From the sequence record PV764602.1: a DNA stretch of 64,000 nucleotides. One strand, given 5' to 3'. The translations under genes and the position numbers were made by a program. Below, one piece after another: positions 8,832 to 31,047 of this stretch. The first letter of the stretch is position 1, and every line of letters begins with the position of its first letter. The notes below the pieces were generated by a model, which saw nothing but the letters and a program-made list of their open reading frames with translations, was not told where the DNA came from and ran no database searches.

Positions 8832-10223
8832 ATGTGGATCACCCCTCAGAATCAAACTCTTGATGACACGTTCGATCCATACTTTCCGGGTACAACTCGG
8901 TGGTATGGTTACACCGGCATCCTCATCAACAATACGCAAGACACCTACGATCGGTACGCTCCTTTGCAGTATGGCAGGCAAGCTCCATCCACGGCGATCC
9001 TTGCGCAGAATCAGGTAGACCTGAATCAGATTTACGCAGCCCGAGGTACAGCCGGCTACCTGCAAGGTATCTCTATCCCAAATTGCTACGTGGGCTGCTC
9101 TGGCGTTACCATCAACGATCTTCTCGCTGCTCGATGCACCATCATCATCAAGAACGACGGTACGTGGCAGCAGTGGTTCTATTCCACCAACTACAAGACG
9201 GATAGCCCGGGTGCATATGCACCTCCTAATCGTGGCATCCCTCGAACCGAAACCAACTTCAGCAACGGACGCATGAACGCCGCCGGTAACTGGGCACAGA
9301 TTCCGTTCGCTGGTGTGGGTAACAACTACGAGACTTTCTGCCACGCTCCTTGGGCTCCATACGAAAGCAAGAACCCACCTGATCTAGATTGGGGTACTGC
9401 CGATCACTATAATCGGTATGATGCTGCACTCATCAACTATATCTGGCACAACTTTAAGGGCCAAGGACAGTTCGGTAGTGCTAGTGATCCATACGTGGTG
9501 CAGAACACTACACAGAACCCTAATGAAGACATTCCAGATGGTCGGGTATATCGCATCGACCGCGATATTCGGTTCACCCTTGGCTTGACTGCACAGGGAC
9601 GCAACAACGTTCGTTGGAACTACGATGACAACGGTGCTCTGTCATGGTACAACCGAGCCAACTTTTCGGTGTACATTCAGACACCCGGCGGCGGTCAGCG
9701 TGTAGGTGCCACCTGCCTTATGACCAATGAGATTCGTTGGAATGCGTGGAATTGGACGGGTGGTAGTGTCGGCGGCGGTGGTGGCGGTGGTGGCGGTGGT
9801 TGCGTTGCTGCTACCAGCTATGTTGACTTCCAAAAGACCGCAGGCACTGTTGAGGCAGGCGACTACCTCATGGGTATGACGGATGATCTGCAATTTATGG
9901 AGCTACACGTCCTGAGTGTGCGTCGTCAAGTGCAACCGTGTGTCCGACTCTACTCAAAGAGTGGCGTCACCCTTGTGTGCTCAAAGTCCACGCCGCTGAC
10001 CCTACAGAACGGAGATTGCGTGCTGGCAGGCGAAGCACGAGCAGGTATCAAGCTTCCGGTACGATTCTTCGCGGCTGATCCTGAGTGGGAAACCATCGTC
10101 AAGATCGAGGAGGTTGGCAACCGGGAAGTGATGCTCATCAACTGCGGTGGACAGAGCTATGCTGCCGGTGAGTTGCCGGGCCGCTATATCTACACCCACA
10201 ACAACAACCAGCAGAAGATGTGA
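8832..10223 (+). CDS. putative tail-tip adhesin with poly-Gly linker and C-terminal Hint domain
   Basis: Three N-terminal repeats ending DLNQIYAARGTA; G10 at 9771-9800, then CVAATSYV (block A, Cys at 9801) and IYTHN (block G, 10197-10202). Confidence 0.75.
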   Translation: MWITPQNQTLDDTFDPYFPGTTRWYGYTGILINNTQDTYDRYAPLQYGRQAPSTAILAQNQVDLNQIYAARGTAGYLQGISIPNCYVGCSGVTINDLLAARCTIIIKNDGTWQQWFYSTNYKTDSPGAYAPPNRGIPRTETNFSNGRMNAAGNWAQIPFAGVGNNYETFCHAPWAPYESKNPPDLDWGTADHYNRYDAALINYIWHNFKGQGQFGSASDPYVVQNTTQNPNEDIPDGRVYRIDRDIRFTLGLTAQGRNNVRWNYDDNGALSWYNRANFSVYIQTPGGGQRVGATCLMTNEIRWNAWNWTGGSVGGGGGGGGGGCVAATSYVDFQKTAGTVEAGDYLMGMTDDLQFMELHVLSVRRQVQPCVRLYSKSGVTLVCSKSTPLTLQNGDCVLAGEARAGIKLPVRFFAADPEWETIVKIEEVGNREVMLINCGGQSYAAGELPGRYIYTHNNNQQKM

Positions 10224-10642
10224 TGATTGGTTCTGACCAACTCTCAGAAGTAGGTGTACCTGTCGGAGAGCTCTCCATTGGGAGGACTCTCGACGTATAT
10301 GCGGTGGACGATCTACACTCGGTCATCCGCCTGAAAGGAACCGTCTCAAATCGGGTCCTGCGCAGTGCAGAAGTAGTAACCATCACAACTGCCTCCGGCG
10401 CTTCCGTTGTGGTGGCTGCCCAAAGTCGCCTCCCTGTCTATAGCGGACAGACAGCGCTGGCTAAGAATGTTGGTGCCAACATGATTGCTGTGATGGCCCC
10501 TAATGGCGCTTTTCGGTGGGAGCGGGTTGCCACCATCGAGGCTGGTACTGAGGCCGTAGTGGACCTCAAGTGTGAAGGCTACATAGTAGCCGGTAACGAT
10601 CCTAAAACCGGGCTAATCTTGGTGTCTGGATCGCTGCCGTGA
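10220..10642 (+). CDS. stand-alone degenerate Hint-like protein
   Basis: Aligns by eye with the upstream Hint domain (V.ITT.SG..V..S...LP; WE.V..IE.G...V.DL.C.G...AG) but lacks the catalytic Cys and HN. Confidence 0.6.
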   Translation: MMIGSDQLSEVGVPVGELSIGRTLDVYAVDDLHSVIRLKGTVSNRVLRSAEVVTITTASGASVVVAAQSRLPVYSGQTALAKNVGANMIAVMAPNGAFRWERVATIEAGTEAVVDLKCEGYIVAGNDPKTGLILVSGSLP

Positions 10643-10656
10643 CAGTCAATTTTACG

Positions 10657-10685
10657 TAAGGACATAAGGCTACGGATAGCAGCCT
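10657..10685 (+). promoter_or_regulatory. paired CsrA-like sites TAAGGACA and GCT-ACGGAT-AGC hairpin
   Basis: Two ANGGAY cores 14 nt apart in the leader of the 10722 gene. Confidence 0.5.
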
Positions 10686-10721
10686 CACATAAAGACACTT
10701 CCCAACAAATAAGGAACGATC

Positions 10722-11399
10722 ATGCAACTCCAGGTTCTTCTCTCCTCTGTCGAAGCTCTCAAGTACGTTGCCGGCCTGCGGCTGCCTGCTGTCAAGGCGT
10801 TCAAGGTCAGTTCATACCTGCAACGTGCTCAGGTCCATATTGACGCATGGCAGGCAACTGGCCGGACTCTGGCCCAGCGCCACTACGGCGAAGACCAGCA
10901 GCCGCTGTCTCCCGAAGACGCCGTACAGTTCAAGGCAGCCACTGACGAAGTGCTTGCTTCGGACGTCGAAGTCGATACTGTCAAGCTCCTGAGCTACCCG
11001 GCAGACTTCAAGGAGGAAAGTTTCATCCCCCTGAACATGGCCATCCTGTCTGAGCACTTTGTTGACGTTACCAAGCCCGAAGCTACTGGTGTCACTAAGA
11101 TTAGTCGGGGTAAGCTGATTGGTGCCTACATGTCCCTGCAACAGCTGGGTCAGCAGGAACTGCCGAAGGCCGTTGGCGAAAATTTGCTGTTCAACCTGAT
11201 GACGGTCCGAGACCTACTGAATTCGTTCTCGGAACGCGACGGTGAACTGACTAAGCAGGGCGATGCGAAGGCTCTGGAGGAATATCGTTCCGAGGAAGTG
11301 GAGGTCAACTTCTATCCCATCAACATCAATGCGTTTGGTGATGTTGAAGTGGCTCCGGCACTTCTCGTAGATGCCGCGTGGCTCATCACTGAGGAATGA
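10722..11399 (+). CDS. hypothetical protein with two tandem copies of a DUF1617-like domain
   Basis: Halves share L...LP.....L...L.......EVEV pattern; AAGGA RBS. Confidence 0.6.
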   Translation: MQLQVLLSSVEALKYVAGLRLPAVKAFKVSSYLQRAQVHIDAWQATGRTLAQRHYGEDQQPLSPEDAVQFKAATDEVLASDVEVDTVKLLSYPADFKEESFIPLNMAILSEHFVDVTKPEATGVTKISRGKLIGAYMSLQQLGQQELPKAVGENLLFNLMTVRDLLNSFSERDGELTKQGDAKALEEYRSEEVEVNFYPININAFGDVEVAPALLVDAAWLITEE

Positions 11400-23415: not shown

Positions 23416-25608
23416 ATGGACCAGCAGGAAGGTGAACACCCCTTCGACTATCATCTTCGGATGATAGTTCACGCTGCCAAGGAGGCTAGGGATGCACACG
23501 AACGCGGAGATCACGTTCGTGCACGTCAATGCCACCAGCAGGTCATGCACCATATCCAAGAATCGAAGAAGCACAAGCCGCCACTGCCTCCACCGTCGCT
23601 CTCTTCTGCGAGTACAGCCATGCCCACTTCTCTACGGGTGCACGCCACAACGCTTCAAGATGCGCACCGCATCGTCAACGATCATGCTTCGGACATCCAT
23701 GGCGGTGACGATCATGCAGACGTGTCAAAGCGTCGATTCACTAAGTACCAAGTAAATGGCGGTGACGCCGAACGCGCCTTGCATGAATTGAAGGCAGCCG
23801 GTTTCAAGCCTGCCAAGAACCATGCACCTCGGGCTCAGCATCATCTGACCAACGGACGCACTCACGTGATGTTCCGTCATCCTGAGGGACGCAACGAAAT
23901 GCACGTAGTACACGTTCAACACGCCACCATCAACACTTCTGAGACCGACAACATGTCCCTTTCCGCACGCGCGCAGGCCAACCTCGCTTCCATTGAAACC
24001 GCTGCAAAGATGACCGAAGAACAGAAGCAGCACTCTGCTTTCAAGCGCGGCTTCAAGGAAGGACACAGTGGCAAGCATGATAGCCGTTCGGGTATCAGTA
24101 ACGCCCACGCCGACCACTTTGAGCAGGGCCGCAATGCTGGTACGCATGCACGTGCTGCGGGTGCATCGTTTGATGCCTCCCATGCCAAGGCCCATCATGA
24201 CTACTTCAACAAGGGCAAGAAAGTTGACCGTCATGTTTCTCCCGAACAGAAGAATCGTATTGACCTTGAGAAGAAGGCTTCTCACTACTCCGACAAAGTA
24301 GCCAAGCACGCCCAGAACACTGGCTACACCGGCAAGACTCACGATTGGGATGGTTGGGTTCACGACGACGCTGTGAAGCACGTCAAGAAGCTTCCTAAGG
24401 ATCATCCGGCTCACAAGGATTTGGAGAAGTTCCATCACTACGATAAGCTGAATCAAGCTGAGGCATCTGTAGCCGAAGAGGCTGCCTATGGTGACTACAA
24501 GGGTTATCATCCGCACCGCGCCCTTCATGACGAAGCTCGCCATATGCTGGAATCGCGTGGTCACAAGACCGGCCGCAGTTCGGAACGTATGAGCGCTCCT
24601 GCCGGTGGTAAGGGTATGCGCATCGATCATCAGGTAGGTAGCAACGCCCACAACCTGCCTCGCCATGAGCAGCACGCCGAACATATGGCTGCCACGCAGG
24701 AACTCCATAAGCTGGTTCAGAAGCATGGCTTCCAGCATACGGAAGGTGGTACGTACCACCACCCTGAAACGGGCGCAAAGGTTCACATCCATACTCCGCG
24801 CGTAGGCAAGTCGGGGGATGGTTATCAGGATCACCACGATAACCATACCAACATGAGCATCACCCACAGTCTCAGCAAGCCGAAGCACACCGCAGGAATG
24901 GAAGAAGAAACTGCTCTGTTCAACAAGGGTCCGAAGTTCGGCAAGAACTGGAAGGATCATGAGAAGATTGACGACCACAAGCATCACATGAAGCATGCTG
25001 GCAAGCATCTTGCTGAGTACAACCGTGCTACGCAGAAGTGCAACGATGCTCGGGATGCTGGCCGCAGCGAAGAAGCCAACAAGTTCGCCGATCTGGCAGA
25101 ACGCCACCTTGGTTGGAACCGGCAGCACCTTTCCAGTGCTCGCCGCATCTACCACAAGTCGATGGCCTCTTTCGACGCGGAAGTCGCCTCTCTGACGATT
25201 GAGGAAGCGGCGGCTGCACCGAAGACTGTGCGTGGTGAACCCAAGCACATCAGTCCGTGGGACAACCGCCATCTGCACGCAGCACCGGGTGCAAACAATT
25301 CGTCGTCTGCTATCGCCAAGAAGGTGCTGCCGAAGACGGGTACTCACACCAGCAACGGTGAAATCAACACCCATCACGTGAGCACCCCTTCCTCTGCGGA
25401 AGATGCGGTTCACATCCATACGAAGCTCCATGAGGCTGGCTTCCAGCCGCACGGTTCGGTTCACAAGTGGAAGTCCGCTGGCGTCACCCACATGCACCAC
25501 ACCTACCGCGATGCATCGGGTCATGAAGCTCGCGTGCACCATTCCGTTAGCCCGTCGCCCAAGGGTGATCGTCACAACGTAAGCGTGCACATCTTGAAGC
25601 ACAGCTAA
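23416..25608 (+). CDS. His-rich multi-module putative internal head protein
   Basis: 730 aa; repeated H..L...GF...Y.HP.G modules separated by ETAA/EEAA/ETAL/EVAS. Confidence 0.75.
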   Translation: MDQQEGEHPFDYHLRMIVHAAKEARDAHERGDHVRARQCHQQVMHHIQESKKHKPPLPPPSLSSASTAMPTSLRVHATTLQDAHRIVNDHASDIHGGDDHADVSKRRFTKYQVNGGDAERALHELKAAGFKPAKNHAPRAQHHLTNGRTHVMFRHPEGRNEMHVVHVQHATINTSETDNMSLSARAQANLASIETAAKMTEEQKQHSAFKRGFKEGHSGKHDSRSGISNAHADHFEQGRNAGTHARAAGASFDASHAKAHHDYFNKGKKVDRHVSPEQKNRIDLEKKASHYSDKVAKHAQNTGYTGKTHDWDGWVHDDAVKHVKKLPKDHPAHKDLEKFHHYDKLNQAEASVAEEAAYGDYKGYHPHRALHDEARHMLESRGHKTGRSSERMSAPAGGKGMRIDHQVGSNAHNLPRHEQHAEHMAATQELHKLVQKHGFQHTEGGTYHHPETGAKVHIHTPRVGKSGDGYQDHHDNHTNMSITHSLSKPKHTAGMEEETALFNKGPKFGKNWKDHEKIDDHKHHMKHAGKHLAEYNRATQKCNDARDAGRSEEANKFADLAERHLGWNRQHLSSARRIYHKSMASFDAEVASLTIEEAAAAPKTVRGEPKHISPWDNRHLHAAPGANNSSSAIAKKVLPKTGTHTSNGEINTHHVSTPSSAEDAVHIHTKLHEAGFQPHGSVHKWKSAGVTHMHHTYRDASGHEARVHHSVSPSPKGDRHNVSVHILKHS

Positions 25609-25611
25609 TCC

Positions 25612-26451
25612 ATGATCGGTGAACGTCTCGCGTACCCAACTGGATATGGCTTCCAGTTGGGTATTCGCACAAGTGAACGTACCATGTGGTCAGATGACGG
25701 GCGCACTGTTCCTCTGGATCATAAGCCGCAGGTAGTTGCCAATCCTATCAACTGCCCGCATCCAATCCCCGAGGATCAATTGATCCCTGCTGATTGGCGC
25801 AATCTGCTCACGGCCAAGCTTCGGTGTCCTGCTTTTGGTACGCAACTTCTGTACGGCATGTGGGCGACCATCGCTCACCTGAGCAACTTCAAAGCTGCAC
25901 AGACGCCGTTGATCGAAATCACGGATGATCTACCTGCGCATAACCTTGGCAACTTCAACATTGTCCACGGTCGGCCTCGCATACAGGTAGCCAAGTCGCG
26001 CATCTACACTTACGCGGCGCTGGCGTCGATTATCGCCCACGAAACTGCGCACCAAATTCAACGCACCGTGTTCAACTCTTCGGAAGAGTCCCACGGCGAA
26101 CTGTTCGACAAGATTTGTAGGGAGATTACCTCCCGGACTGGCATTGCGATCCATCGTAGTGTCGATTTTGTTGGGGACAGGTCATTCGCTGTTAGCGATC
26201 CCCTGCCTAGCAAGTACCCCATTTACTACATCATCGCTGATGGGCGGGTATCGTACACGGATAGTCATAGTGAAGTGACGGAAATAATCACTGCTCCTGA
26301 CGCTATTGATGCAGACCTCCAAGTCTACAAGAGCCACGACATTAGCTTGATTGACTGGCTCCGTCCTGAAACTGACCTGAAACGATTTACCCGAGTTCGC
26401 CCGGACGTGCTAAAGGTCATCGCACACAGAGGCACACGCATTTACCCATGA
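25612..26451 (+). CDS. SprT-like zinc metalloprotease
   Basis: AHETAHQ (HExxH) followed by HGELF. Confidence 0.8.
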   Translation: MIGERLAYPTGYGFQLGIRTSERTMWSDDGRTVPLDHKPQVVANPINCPHPIPEDQLIPADWRNLLTAKLRCPAFGTQLLYGMWATIAHLSNFKAAQTPLIEITDDLPAHNLGNFNIVHGRPRIQVAKSRIYTYAALASIIAHETAHQIQRTVFNSSEESHGELFDKICREITSRTGIAIHRSVDFVGDRSFAVSDPLPSKYPIYYIIADGRVSYTDSHSEVTEIITAPDAIDADLQVYKSHDISLIDWLRPETDLKRFTRVRPDVLKVIAHRGTRIYP

Positions 26452-28454
26452 GCAACATTCACGATTTCATCAAGACCCAGCTGCTGGCTGCTGCCCATTT
26501 CCAAGAAACGCTGGATGCGGGTGGCAAGAAGTGGCTCAAGAGTGGTGGTATCGCCGACGGTCGGAAGTTCCTAGAGGAACGCAAGTTCCCTAAATCGGTC
26601 ATCAAGGCATACGATACTGCCATGAAGAACGTCCTTGCAGGTAAGGACTTTGAGGAAGACGTTGATCCGCATTTGCAGGAAGTACAGAATGCAGTGAAGG
26701 AGCGTCTGCCCAAGCTGACCAAGGACACTTCTATTCCGATCGCAGACATCAAGACTCTGAAAGACGTGAGTCTGATCCTGCGCACTGAATCGGACTCTGC
26801 ATGGGCACGTGTCGAGAAGGACATTGGCCGACTGCGTGACGAAGACCTCAACCGCATCATCGCTCCTGCTGTGGAATCCTCCAGCAAGTACGTCAAAGAC
26901 CTCAAGGCAGCGTTCAAGAAACTGACGGGCAAAGATGGTACTGACTTCCGTGACCTAGAAGAACTGGCTGATCTTGATACTGATGAGTATCGGGAAGCAG
27001 TCAAGAAGATCATGGGCAAGAAGCCGGCTGCTGCTAAGGAATTCACCAAGGCACGGAGCGAGTACACCAAGGCCAGCAAGAAGGCCCACATGGCTCATGT
27101 GCGTGCTTCTGGCAGCCACCTGATGGACGTGGAGACGGCCAAGAAACACCTTGAGTCTAAGGGTTTCCGTCATTCCATTCCTGAAGGCTTCAAGGGCAAG
27201 CTTGACGAGAACGGACGTATCCATACTGTGCATGGGGAGCCCATCGCTGGTGGTATCTCTGGCACCGTCAAGATGAATCCGAAGTACGAGAAGGGTTCTA
27301 GCGTCAATGTCCTGACCTACTATCCTCCGGGTGCTAAGACGCCGCAGTACCTGTTCACCGCAGGTGCCAAGGCTAACGCCATCCAGAAGAAGAGTCAGAA
27401 GGTTGACGAACTGTCCGATAAGATTGGTGACCTGCGTAAGAAGTGGGGCGCTGACCTGAACAGTAAGGACCCGAGCACTCGCATCGCTGCTGCCATCCTC
27501 GAAGCCTGCTACCACACGTCTGCACGTATCGGTAACCTGAGCAACAAGAATGACGGCATGACGACTTTGAAGGGCAAGAATGTCAAGGTCAACGGGGATA
27601 CGGTCACCTTCAGCTACACTGGTAAGTCGGATCAGCATCAGAAGCACGTAATGAAGGGTGATGATCCCATTTCCAAGAAGGCTGTGGAAATCATCAAGGC
27701 CCTCAAGGAAAACGCGAAGCCTGACGACCTGCTTTTCCGCAACAAGAATCGCCGCGTCGGTAGCCGTCAGGTCAACGATTACTTCACCTCCCTCGGTTCC
27801 CCCACCACGGTGCACAAGATGCGCCACGTTCGCGGCAACGCGATCATGAAGGAAGAACTGAAGAAGAAGCCGAAGACTGACGACGACAAGAAGATCACGG
27901 CCTTCCTGACTGCGGCTCTGGCCAAGGTTGGTGAGCAGCTGGGTCACTTCAACAAGGGCGAGGTCACCTTCGCCACTGCCCTGCAATCCTACGTCTCTCC
28001 GTCAATCGTTGAGAAGTATTATGACAGCTACAACATTCGTCCGCCCGCACGCATTCAGAAGGTTATTGACCAAGCCAAGAAGGACAATGGTGAACCGACT
28101 ACTAAGTTGCAGGACTTGCCGCATCACGGCGACGTGGCGGAAAAGCCTAAGGTACCTCGGGCGGTTAAGCGTGTAGCAAAGGAAGAAAAGGAAGCACCGA
28201 AGCCGCGTGTAGTGAAAAAGGTGGAGAAGCCTGCACCGAAGCCGCTGCGTCAAGTCAAGAAGGTGGAGAAGCCTGAACCCAAGGAACGCAAGCCCACACG
28301 CACGGTCAAGCACATTGAGCTGGGTCCCCTGTCTGCACAGCCTGTGAAGACGCCAGCTTGGTTCCAGAAGTTGAGCGGTAACGCACAGCGGACTTACATC
28401 AAGGAAAATCCGCACACCAAGTTGAAGCCCACCAAGCTGCCGGGCTCGAAGTAA
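26448..28454 (+). CDS. DNA topoisomerase IB with long N-terminal extension and Lys/Pro-rich tail
   Basis: Catalytic pentad by hand count: R360 (ARIG), K393 (YTGK), R459 (KMRH), H500 (LGH), Y515 (SYV). Confidence 0.85.
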   Translation: MSNIHDFIKTQLLAAAHFQETLDAGGKKWLKSGGIADGRKFLEERKFPKSVIKAYDTAMKNVLAGKDFEEDVDPHLQEVQNAVKERLPKLTKDTSIPIADIKTLKDVSLILRTESDSAWARVEKDIGRLRDEDLNRIIAPAVESSSKYVKDLKAAFKKLTGKDGTDFRDLEELADLDTDEYREAVKKIMGKKPAAAKEFTKARSEYTKASKKAHMAHVRASGSHLMDVETAKKHLESKGFRHSIPEGFKGKLDENGRIHTVHGEPIAGGISGTVKMNPKYEKGSSVNVLTYYPPGAKTPQYLFTAGAKANAIQKKSQKVDELSDKIGDLRKKWGADLNSKDPSTRIAAAILEACYHTSARIGNLSNKNDGMTTLKGKNVKVNGDTVTFSYTGKSDQHQKHVMKGDDPISKKAVEIIKALKENAKPDDLLFRNKNRRVGSRQVNDYFTSLGSPTTVHKMRHVRGNAIMKEELKKKPKTDDDKKITAFLTAALAKVGEQLGHFNKGEVTFATALQSYVSPSIVEKYYDSYNIRPPARIQKVIDQAKKDNGEPTTKLQDLPHHGDVAEKPKVPRAVKRVAKEEKEAPKPRVVKKVEKPAPKPLRQVKKVEKPEPKERKPTRTVKHIELGPLSAQPVKTPAWFQKLSGNAQRTYIKENPHTKLKPTKLPGSK

Positions 28455-28461
28455 GTAATAC

Positions 28462-28495
28462 CCCACCGACTAACCCTCGGTGGGTTCTGTCTTTG
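28462..28495 (+). terminator. probable terminator
   Basis: CCCACCGA/TCGGTGGG stem followed by TTCTGTCTTT. Confidence 0.55.
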
Positions 28496-28514
28496 CTTTG
28501 TAGGAGAATCAACA

Positions 28515-29474
28515 ATGCCTGTTCGTATGCTGCAAGGTATCGCCAAGAAAGCGGGTACCACGCACGACCACGCAGAGAAGATTTGGGACGATAGCAAGAA
28601 AATCGTTGATAAGAAGTTCTCGGAAGATGACCCGAGCTACTACCCATACCTGACAGGGATCGTCAAACGTCGCCTAGGCTTGTCGAAAGGTGAGAAGGCG
28701 ATGTTCGACTCCCAAGACTCTACTAACGAGGAAGCTGACGTGGAAGAAACCGCAAAGAAGAATTGGAGTCAGGAAGTAACGGACAACGAAAAGTTCCATC
28801 CAAAGGAAGGTATCTTCAAGCAGAGCTCGGAGAAGATCGCCAAGTATCTGCTTAGTAAGGGTAAAGGAAAGGCCATGAGCCGCCTCACCTTCTACATCAA
28901 CCGGGCTGGCAAGTCGCTGAGTCCCGAAGATCGTAATCGTCTTGAGCGTGCCAAGAAGATTATCTCCAATGCTACTGGCAAGGAAACGGCCAAGGCGCAC
29001 GACTATACCCCGCAGTACAAGACGCCTGAACAAATCGACAAGGGCCTGCGTATTACGGACAAGTTCTTCCGCACCATCTACTTCCCCAAGCTGGATAGCG
29101 ACGGCAAGATCGTTGGCTACGATGAAGAACAAGTCAGTTCGGTGGACTTCGTGTTCCTGCAATCTGATCCCGACACTGATCCTGTGTGGACTGATCCCCA
29201 CACCAGTGCGGTTGTCAAGGCGAGCACCCTGCATCACTACATGGTTCACCACGCAACCCCTAACGCACAGCGCCGTCGTCGGAACCTGCTGCAAGCTTAC
29301 GCATCGGCAACCAACTTCAATGGCCCGATCATGAGCAACGGTTCTGTCACCGCTGAGTTCATGTGTCACATGCACGGCCATAGCAGCATTGCTATGGCCG
29401 AAGTAAGCCGCTCCTTTGAGTACCACAACCGAGTTCATGCTGGCGTGGATGACGATCTGATTGCCTCCAGCTGA
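28515..29474 (+). CDS. modular protein containing a DUF3175-like domain
   Basis: KKNWS...AMSRLTFYINRAGKSL...RLERAK matches my recollection of DUF3175; flanked by ETAK motifs. Confidence 0.7.
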   Translation: MPVRMLQGIAKKAGTTHDHAEKIWDDSKKIVDKKFSEDDPSYYPYLTGIVKRRLGLSKGEKAMFDSQDSTNEEADVEETAKKNWSQEVTDNEKFHPKEGIFKQSSEKIAKYLLSKGKGKAMSRLTFYINRAGKSLSPEDRNRLERAKKIISNATGKETAKAHDYTPQYKTPEQIDKGLRITDKFFRTIYFPKLDSDGKIVGYDEEQVSSVDFVFLQSDPDTDPVWTDPHTSAVVKASTLHHYMVHHATPNAQRRRRNLLQAYASATNFNGPIMSNGSVTAEFMCHMHGHSSIAMAEVSRSFEYHNRVHAGVDDDLIASS

Positions 29475-29519
29475 TACGGATGAATCCTCATAGTAGGGAG
29501 TGGCCAACCTAACTTTTTA

Positions 29520-30249: not shown

Positions 30250-31047
30250 ATGTATGTGTTTACCAACACCTCAGCTAATCAGATGACGTTCGGCGACCTG
30301 ACGCTGGCCCCGAACGCCACCACTGAATTCCCTGACGATCGGGTGGCTGCTCTGAGCACCCACAACCTGAAAGCGCTCAACGATTTTGCCAACGGCAATC
30401 CGCTGATCCTGAAGGTCGAGTATCAGGCTTCGGTTCCGCCGGTCACCATCGGTCCTGTATCCGCCGCTCCTGCCATTTCTACTCCGTTCGGTAACAAACT
30501 GATGCAGGCTGCTGATGCAGATGCTGCTAAGGAACTGCTCGGGGAAGGTCAAGGTAGTGGCTATACGTTGCCTGTCGCTACGGGCTCGGTCCTTGGTGGC
30601 GTCAAGATCGGTGCGGGCCTTAGTGCTACCGCCGATGGCACCCTGAGTCGCAGCGCCCTTGTTGCCGGAGACATTCCAGATTTGGACGCCGCCAAGATCG
30701 CCTCCGGCACTCTGGCGGTTGCGCGTTTGGGTACTGGCACTCCAAGTGCTGCTAACGTGCTTTTGGGTTCGGGCGCTTTTGGCGTACCTCCGACTGCTAC
30801 TAAGGCAACCGCTCTGGCTACGGGCCGTACCTTCACTCTGAGTGGCGGGGCTTCCGGTACCACCGCCTCTCCGTTCGATGGCTCTGCTAACGCCACCCTC
30901 AACGTTACGCTGGCTACTCCGACAAGTGCTCTCCGTGGCGGTGTCCTCCAGCAGGCCGCCATTGCTGACTTGACCGCCGCTCCTACCCAGCAGGATTTCA
31001 ACGCCCTGCTGGCAGCCCTGCGTGCAGCCTCGGTAATCGCTTCCTGA
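30250..31047 (+). CDS. head fibre / decoration protein
   Basis: YTLPVATGSVLGGVKIG repeat; C-terminal QAAIADL...DFNALLAALRAA head-fibre motif. Confidence 0.7.
   Translation: MYVFTNTSANQMTFGDLTLAPNATTEFPDDRVAALSTHNLKALNDFANGNPLILKVEYQASVPPVTIGPVSAAPAISTPFGNKLMQAADADAAKELLGEGQGSGYTLPVATGSVLGGVKIGAGLSATADGTLSRSALVAGDIPDLDAAKIASGTLAVARLGTGTPSAANVLLGSGAFGVPPTATKATALATGRTFTLSGGASGTTASPFDGSANATLNVTLATPTSALRGGVLQQAAIADLTAAPTQQDFNALLAALRAASVIAS

Follow-up and report, generated by a model that had tools for sequence, protein, structure and literature searches.

Pairing of a SprT-like metalloprotease with topoisomerase IB in jumbo phages, a candidate module for the removal of trapped topoisomerase

Introduction

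Proteolytic removal of topoisomerase I trapped on DNA is known from eukaryotes, in which it is targeted via ubiquitin, SUMO, and the replisome, and the roles of the SprT-like proteases of prokaryotes and viruses are, to our knowledge, largely unknown. Human SPRTN and yeast Wss1 are described in PMC5416836 and PMC10547559 as proteases that degrade Top1 cleavage complexes. Among jumbo phages, the survey of Iyer, Anantharaman, Krishnan, Burroughs, and Aravind (2021; PMC7824862) includes the SprT-like peptidases of PaBG, Lu11, and Motura, and lists a phage-specific type IB topoisomerase (TopIB) in Motura, NCTB, phiRSL1, Lu11, and PaBG. Here we analyze a stretch of 64,000 nucleotides ("the window") from Xanthomonas phage PhiXhv-15 (PV764602.1), in which positions 25612-28454 carry a gene for a SprT-like protease (ORF A) directly followed by a gene for a TopIB (ORF B). 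The sequence record labels them "hypothetical protein" and "topoisomerase," respectively, and the paper describing the PhiXhv phages (PMC13340338) makes no mention of a topoisomerase or of SprT.

ORF A resembles SPRTN and Wss1 in its zincin core, with an HExxH motif and a third histidine in the SprT position, and its proposed client belongs to the type IB topoisomerases, the classic substrate of both eukaryotic proteases. Unlike SPRTN, it lacks the zinc-binding subdomain that contacts single-stranded DNA (ssDNA) and is instead extended by a Tudor/SH3-like barrel at the N terminus and by a domain of unmatched fold at the C terminus; no SHP, PIP, UBZ, or SIM motif was noted in it, with no search aimed at these motifs. 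The specificity of ORF A appears to be hard-wired by an operon or a fusion with one topoisomerase, whereas SPRTN and Wss1 rely on ubiquitin, SUMO, and the replisome, and the system is viral or prokaryotic and known here from sequence. ORF B shares its catalytic core and pentad with the TopIBs of vaccinia virus, Deinococcus radiodurans (2f4q), and Caldiarchaeum (6z01), the D. radiodurans enzyme having an asparagine at the position of the pentad histidine. Unlike the poxvirus and bacterial enzymes, the phage TopIBs carry about 300 extra N-terminal residues, those of the PhiXhv clade also have a Lys/Pro-rich tail with an end motif, and the phage enzyme is accompanied by a dedicated protease gene. 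ArdC of plasmid R388 (PMC7213743) is, like ORF A, a DNA-linked zincin protease of a mobile element, but it has a different N-terminal ssDNA-binding domain, an anti-restriction role, and no topoisomerase partner, and ORF A has no ArdC Pfam match at an E value of ≤1. The jumbo-phage SprT-like peptidases of PMC7824862 share both their superfamily and their phage group (2.2) with ORF A; in contrast to the present analysis, that paper treats SprT and TopIB separately and does not mention their linkage, a fusion, or the ORF A subfamily. Our literature search found no paper combining a SprT-like protease with topoisomerase IB. New here are the family-wide association of the two genes in 13 of 13 loci, a natural fusion, the asymmetry of their distribution, and the domain anatomy of the protease.

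Results

PhiXhv-15, a jumbo myovirus with a genome of 228,725 bp, infects X. hortorum pv. vitians. Positions 25000-29500 of the window are 100% identical to this genome and about 97 to 98% identical to four sister genomes. ORF A (25612-26451, + strand) encodes 279 amino acids (aa) and is classified as a TopIB-associated SprT-like zinc metalloprotease by its reading frame, the Pfam SprT-like profile, family alignments, and an AF2 model; ORF B (26448-28454, + strand) encodes a phage-type topoisomerase IB of 668 aa, as judged from Pfam PF01028, PHROG 23460, and the solved structures 6z01 and 2f4q. A preliminary description of this DNA had reported an ATGA overlap between an HExxH SprT-like gene and a TopIB gene with an intact R-K-R-H-Y pentad, and each of these observations is confirmed: positions 26448-26451 (+) read ATGA, with the stop codon of ORF A overlapping the start codon of ORF B, the motif HETAH lies at aa 143-147 of ORF A, and the pentad residues of ORF B (R360, K393, R459, H500, and Y515) are invariant in the 18 phage TopIBs compared. 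The junction is an overlap or a gap of at most 16 nucleotides (nt) in nine loci including the window, and the ATGA arrangement probably represents translational coupling of the two genes.

Relatives were collected by tblastn, word search, and profile search. A profile built from five ORF A orthologues gave 30 matches among 1.84 billion representative proteins at an E value of ≤1e-3. The contigs traced from these matches, together with loci reached from the TopIB side, make up 13 distinct loci (P0010, P0018, and most weak short matches were left out), across which protease identity ranges from 17 to 50%. The contigs are short, and the absence of a gene is not readable from them. Co-occurrence in relatives, the absence of which the preliminary description had named as a refuting result, is complete at these loci: a TopIB gene lies downstream of the ORF A-family protease on the same strand in 13 of 13. 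The two genes are adjacent in nine (the window, L022, L025, L027/28, L029, L032, L034, L035, and L044), separated by one, three, and four genes in L024, L031, and L033, respectively, and fused into a single 830-aa open reading frame in L030. The 13 loci cover at least five different genomic contexts.

The reciprocal survey, in which whole phage records were searched with PF10263 and the ORF A family profile, yielded a more varied picture. The SprT gene is adjacent to and upstream of TopIB in the PhiXhv group. In PaBG, Lu11, and HRDY3, a SprT protein of 441 to 448 aa (L002 1975-3321, L003 2904-4232, and L007 2317-3642, respectively), which begins with a KMPT-N domain (PF20294; 45 to 58 bits), is encoded 1.6 to 2.6 kb upstream of TopIB, and genes for an MmcB-like nuclease and a dTMP kinase come next, ahead of TopIB. 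BCSR5 has a 449-aa SprT 1 kb downstream of TopIB, with a LEM-3-like GIY-YIG nuclease gene in between. The distance grows to 11 to 17 kb in Rhizobium phage RHph_N46 and 25 kb in Motura, and phiRSL1 and LR745208 have a TopIB and no clear SprT. NCTB has a TopIB and no SprT, and a different HExxH zincin (L006 7671-8525) is encoded directly downstream of its TopIB. This zincin, which has a weak anthrax-lethal-factor-like (ATLF) match and is assigned to PHROG 37079, is not a SprT and is unrelated to gp83 of PaBG; the protease may have been replaced in NCTB by a nonorthologous zincin. The distribution is asymmetric, as TopIB occurs without SprT in phiRSL1 and NCTB, while the ORF A family occurs without TopIB in none of the 13 loci. 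This pattern fits a role of the ORF A family as an accessory that serves TopIB. The MmcB-like nuclease was considered as a fixed third partner and rejected: each of five phages has one copy, which adjoins SprT only in PaBG, Lu11, and HRDY3 and is located about 170 kb away in PhiXhv-15.

In the fused locus, one reading frame joins the two proteins. Residues 5-239 of the 830-aa L030 protein align with the L027 and L032 proteases and carry the zinc motif as HEMIH; a linker of about 25 residues follows, and residues 267-829 align with the full-length TopIBs of the same two loci, with all five catalytic residues present. A six-frame profile search of the L030 contig did not find the C-terminal domain of the free protease in any frame, which argues against a simple frameshift artifact. 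The domain is thus missing precisely where protease and topoisomerase are covalently joined, which indicates that aa 193-279 of ORF A are probably a domain that normally docks the protease to TopIB.

The catalytic site of ORF A is complete in its translation, with H143 and H147 as zinc ligands and E144 as the catalytic residue within HETAH (26038-26052, +). H161 (26092-26094, +) is the third zinc ligand at the SprT-type H-G-x-x-F position, followed by G-E-L-F. These four residues are invariant in 12 ORF A-family members and 18 phage SprTs, and W84 and P99 are invariant beside them in the ORF A family alignments (A2/A4). Against the Pfam SprT-like profile PF10263 (cutoff, 25.6 bits), ORF A scores 25.0 bits with hmmscan and 26.7 bits when the genome is searched in six frames, and its orthologues score 28.4 to 42.7 bits, with some below the cutoff. 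The precomputed annotation of a protein identical to ORF A includes PF10263, and its neighbors in the ESM Atlas are viral SprT-like clusters. No PDB sequence match was found at an E value of ≤10 and no PHROG match, and tblastn against phages recovered only the five near-identical genomes.

Structural comparison resolved three parts in the protein. An AF2 model computed from five orthologues (pLDDT, 72.7) has a SPRTN-type metalloprotease core at aa 60-190 (25789-26181, +), which superposes on residues 28-159 of human SPRTN (6mdw) with a VIA-align Z score of 13.9 and a root mean square deviation (rmsd) of 2.9 Å over 126 residues; the next zincins, selecase and abylysin, reach Z scores of ≤8.6. 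Human SPRTN is also the best solved match of the model in Foldseek (probability, 1.00; E value, 4e-4), and many viral SprT-like models in BFVD match the core. The N-terminal aa 1-44 (25612-25743, +) are modeled as a small Tudor/SH3/KOW-like beta-barrel (VIA-align Z score of about 6; rmsd, 1.3 to 1.8 over 41 to 46 residues) resembling the PHF1/PHF19 Tudor domains, the Spt5 KOW domain, and the C-terminal domain of UvrD; such small barrels are common, and we hold this assignment with moderate confidence. The C-terminal alpha/beta domain (aa 193-279; 26188-26448, +) is family specific and reaches a model pLDDT of 87.6 when folded alone. It has no match among solved structures (best Z score, 4.6) or viral models (best Foldseek E value, 0.08). 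Its identification as the zinc-binding subdomain of SPRTN was rejected, since it has no cysteine cluster and no structural match. Wss1/WLM, ArdC-like, and IrrE/ImmA identities were likewise rejected, as the Pfam scan at an E value of ≤1 returned only SprT-like and a weak ATLF match, and PprI/IrrE structures appeared only at Foldseek E values of >0.1. Sequence comparison and modeling together indicate that ORF A is a SprT-superfamily protease with accessory domains of its own.

ORF B matches the Pfam Topoisom_I profile PF01028 over aa 307-515 with 70.3 bits (cutoff, 23.7) and PHROG 23460 with an E value of 1e-89, and its matches to the solved TopIBs 6z01 and 2f4q have E values of 4e-7 and 1e-6. 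The catalytic core occupies aa 304-545 (27357-28082, +; alignments A1 and A3 and the 18-sequence alignment). The pentad was mapped via 2f4q and the phage alignments, with Y515 (codon 27990-27992) as the nucleophile, and it is conserved in 18/18 sequences; ORF B is therefore predicted to be an active type IB topoisomerase. The additional N-terminal region of phage TopIBs is itself conserved. In the PhiXhv clade only, the alignments show a Lys/Pro/Glu-rich tail (aa 546-668; 28083-28451, +), in which a variable linker is followed by an end motif (28353-28439, +) of the form P-x-W-F ... Q-R-x-Y-x-K-x-x-P ... K-P-T-K. This motif is kept in four relatives of 39 to 49% identity and has no other copy in the window, and it may be a docking peptide. 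TopIB had been called uncommon in tailed phages, which holds for the ORF B family: of 50,697 phage records, tblastn located it in 22, each from a jumbo phage and at least 192 kb long. A scan of the viral contig collection with ORF B as the sole query gave no confirmed relative. Two variants of the gene were observed among the relatives; in L031 (6068-7894), TopIB is divided between two genes, one for an N-terminal part of 303 aa and one for a catalytic part of 270 aa, and in L033 (10480-11823), the stop codon of TopIB directly adjoins an IS605 OrfB/TnpB-like gene.

The genomic surroundings of the pair are partly shared and partly not. In eight of the 13 loci, which represent one old lineage, the upstream flank encodes homologues of the window's 412-, 435-, and 434-aa proteins, and the connector gene is present downstream. 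Within this PhiXhv lineage, gene content varies from the 434-aa homologue up to the protease, and the junction of protease and TopIB is kept. A 265-aa protein with a head-fiber match (PF11133; 33.6 bits) is encoded at 30250-31047 (+), after the TopIB block and before the head-tail connector gene, which places the pair within a virion-gene region. L029, L034, L035, L044, the PaBG clade, and BCSR5 do not have the PhiXhv-lineage synteny; the neighboring genes in L044, for example, are one for a tubulin and a giant one of the SNF2-intein type. The pair may accordingly behave as a mobile unit. The identity matrices of protease and TopIB are correlated (Mantel r, 0.70; P = 2e-4), and the protease diverges faster than TopIB while always keeping its zinc site. 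Linkage across such deep divergence, in varied layouts and contexts, together with the fusion, makes a functional link between ORF A and ORF B very probable.

Discussion

The evidence on both genes is consistent with a dedicated two-gene module in which ORF A degrades TopIB that is trapped on DNA, a reading to which we assign a probability of roughly 0.5. By analogy with the eukaryotic pathway, the phages would probably carry a minimal, ubiquitin-free version of trapped-topoisomerase removal. In relaxing the 229-kb phage DNA, ORF B would form a covalent 3'-phosphotyrosyl intermediate via Y515, and it could become trapped at nicks, abasic sites, or mismatches or by an arriving fork. ORF A, made together with ORF B through the ATGA coupling and docked by its own C-terminal domain, would then degrade the trapped enzyme down to a small peptide while tethered to it, with specificity coming from docking or fusion and not from ubiquitin. 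Nucleases of the phage or of the host, for example SbcCD-type, MmcB-like, or GIY-YIG enzymes, could remove the peptide remnant; the genes for MmcB-like and GIY-YIG nucleases near the pair in two clades fit such a later clean-up, although they are not constant partners. A protease of its own would be needed by the phage if the host is without Tdp1 and without ubiquitin- or SUMO-guided SPRTN/Wss1 pathways, a condition that is assumed here for Xanthomonas on general grounds. The Tdp1 profile PF06087 gave no match in five phages, and the control genomes were equally silent, so this result is uninformative.

In the preliminary description, the role proposed for the protease was to clear stalled TopIB, or else host proteins covalently bound to phage DNA. 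The functional link that this implies is supported, and of the two clients, host proteins are less favored than TopIB, because the protease is never without TopIB in the examined loci.

Several observations weigh against the degradation of trapped TopIB by ORF A. Inherited synteny could account for much of the linkage, and the co-divergence of the two proteins is expected from linkage alone. SprT is 11 to 25 kb from TopIB in Motura and the Rhizobium phages and missing in phiRSL1, which shows that the protease is not indispensable. SprT-like proteins are also common in viruses without TopIB, as seen in the BFVD matches and reported in PMC7824862. ORF A has neither the zinc-binding subdomain of SPRTN (the match to 6mdw ends at residue 159) nor the zinc ribbon of Escherichia coli SprT, and its C-terminal domain is unmatched, which makes DNA-dependent activation hypothetical. 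The fusion is known from one contig of one sample. Finally, the pair lies among head and connector genes and not among replication genes, a location that fits a role in the virion equally well.

A regulatory or maturation protease is one alternative, in which ORF A acts on free and not on trapped TopIB, either trimming the N-terminal extension or the Lys/Pro-rich tail for activation or limiting the lifetime of a potentially toxic nicking enzyme, which would thereby be shut down at a set time. Tight linkage, coupling, and fusion are explained equally well in this way, the roughly 300 extra N-terminal residues and the clade-specific tail could be processed, and virion proteins of jumbo phages are often proteolytically processed (PMC7412058). 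However, the closest structural relative of ORF A is a DNA-protein-crosslink protease and not a site-specific maturase, the tail is absent from most TopIB partners that still keep the protease, and no conserved cleavage site was identified. We therefore consider maturation unlikely.

A similarly low likelihood is given to a protease that TopIB, or its binding to DNA, guides to other DNA-bound proteins, such as host nucleoid proteins, a host topoisomerase, or defense or crosslinked proteins. PMC7824862 proposed host targets for the SprT-like peptidases that group 2.2 jumbo phages encode, and SPRTN-type proteases are promiscuous once on DNA (PMC7826251). The Tudor/KOW-like barrel at the N terminus could serve to bind a further partner, and an ADP-ribosyltransferase, typically a host-modifying enzyme, is encoded near TopIB in L022. 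A general host-directed protease should nevertheless also occur without TopIB, but all 13 ORF A-family loci have one; the fusion ties the protease to TopIB itself, and none of our results points to a host target.

The pair could also be packaged in the head, both proteins being made late, enclosed in the capsid, and acting at packaging or ejection, where the protease would free TopIB or internal proteins from the DNA. Poxvirus virions contain TopIB, and in the PhiXhv lineage, the pair has conserved genes of unknown function on one side and the genes for the head fiber and head-tail connector on the other. In PaBG, the neighboring gp83 belongs to the virion proteins, with the major capsid gene at a distance of three genes, and phiRSL1 encodes a homologue of the 412-aa upstream protein of the window 4 kb from its TopIB. 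The ADP-ribosyltransferase that neighbors TopIB in L022 is Alt-like and recalls Alt of phage T4, which is head packaged. This protein of 378 aa (10218-11354) contains an ADP-ribosyltransferase exoenzyme domain (Pfam, 49 bits) and is encoded two genes after a TopIB of 46% identity. On the other side, TopIB (gp84) and SprT (gp89) are not among the 14 virion bands of PaBG, which comprise Coomassie-visible bands only, and the neighbors in L029, L034, L035, L044, and phiRSL1 are not structural genes. We regard packaging in the head as quite unlikely; it concerns the site of action and is compatible with the degradation of trapped TopIB.

The complete lack of a functional link, with the genes kept as neighbors by the inherited gene order of one old jumbo-phage lineage, would account for the synteny shared upstream and downstream by 8 of 13 loci, for co-divergence, and for separation or loss in Motura, the Rhizobium phages, and phiRSL1, but it is very improbable given the in-frame fusion in L030, the adjacency of the pair in at least four contexts without shared synteny, the heavy gene turnover just upstream of a junction that is kept, the renewed proximity in inverted order in BCSR5, and a chance of about 0.03, roughly estimated, that a single-copy gene falls within 3.5 kb on either side in a 250-kb genome.

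Degradation of trapped TopIB by its partner might be developed into a more specific and tentative proposal, which we consider possible but doubtful: a self-limiting topoisomerase, whose docked or fused protease is inactive until TopIB becomes stuck and then destroys its partner, perhaps in a head-packaged form. If true, this would be a ubiquitin-independent, single-client device for crosslink repair, which if packaged would work on the incoming or packaged genome. The relationship of SPRTN to Top1 in eukaryotes would then have a much older, or convergent, viral counterpart, and the 830-aa fusion would be the first known topoisomerase with its own removal protease. With only two proteins involved, the pair also makes client, protease, and docking directly testable. 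The pairing suggests that TopIB is a liability which its owner must be able to clear, and it offers a concrete, testable role for a "hypothetical protein" conserved in a jumbo-phage lineage that includes phages under development for crop biocontrol.

Additional features of the region

ORF A starts 3 nt past the stop codon of a 730-aa open reading frame (23416-25608, +). Histidine makes up 12.7% of the encoded protein, which matches nothing in Pfam or PHROG, and short segments of it resemble parts of several different proteins in L024 and L022, as if it had been assembled from shuffled modules.

Directly 3' of the TopIB stop codon, a consensus scan identified a terminator-like hairpin (28462-28484, +) with an 8-bp stem that includes 6 G-C pairs; the number of terminator-like sites in the region is not above that in shuffled sequences. 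The next gene (28515-29474, +) encodes a 319-aa protein with a DUF3175 segment (Pfam, 43 bits). Relatives of this protein are found 3' of TopIB in L022 (11384-12103) and L025 (10916-12124) and between SprT and TopIB in L024 (7138-8004), and the DUF3175 protein may be a third member of the module.

DNA nearly identical to positions 25612-28454 (75 to 82% of the sampled words) was also detected in public metagenome runs from 10 studies, which indicates that the species of PhiXhv-15 is widespread. The runs derive from wastewater, sediment, freshwater, drinking water, and honey, and some of the wastewater libraries are designated "metatranscriptomic."

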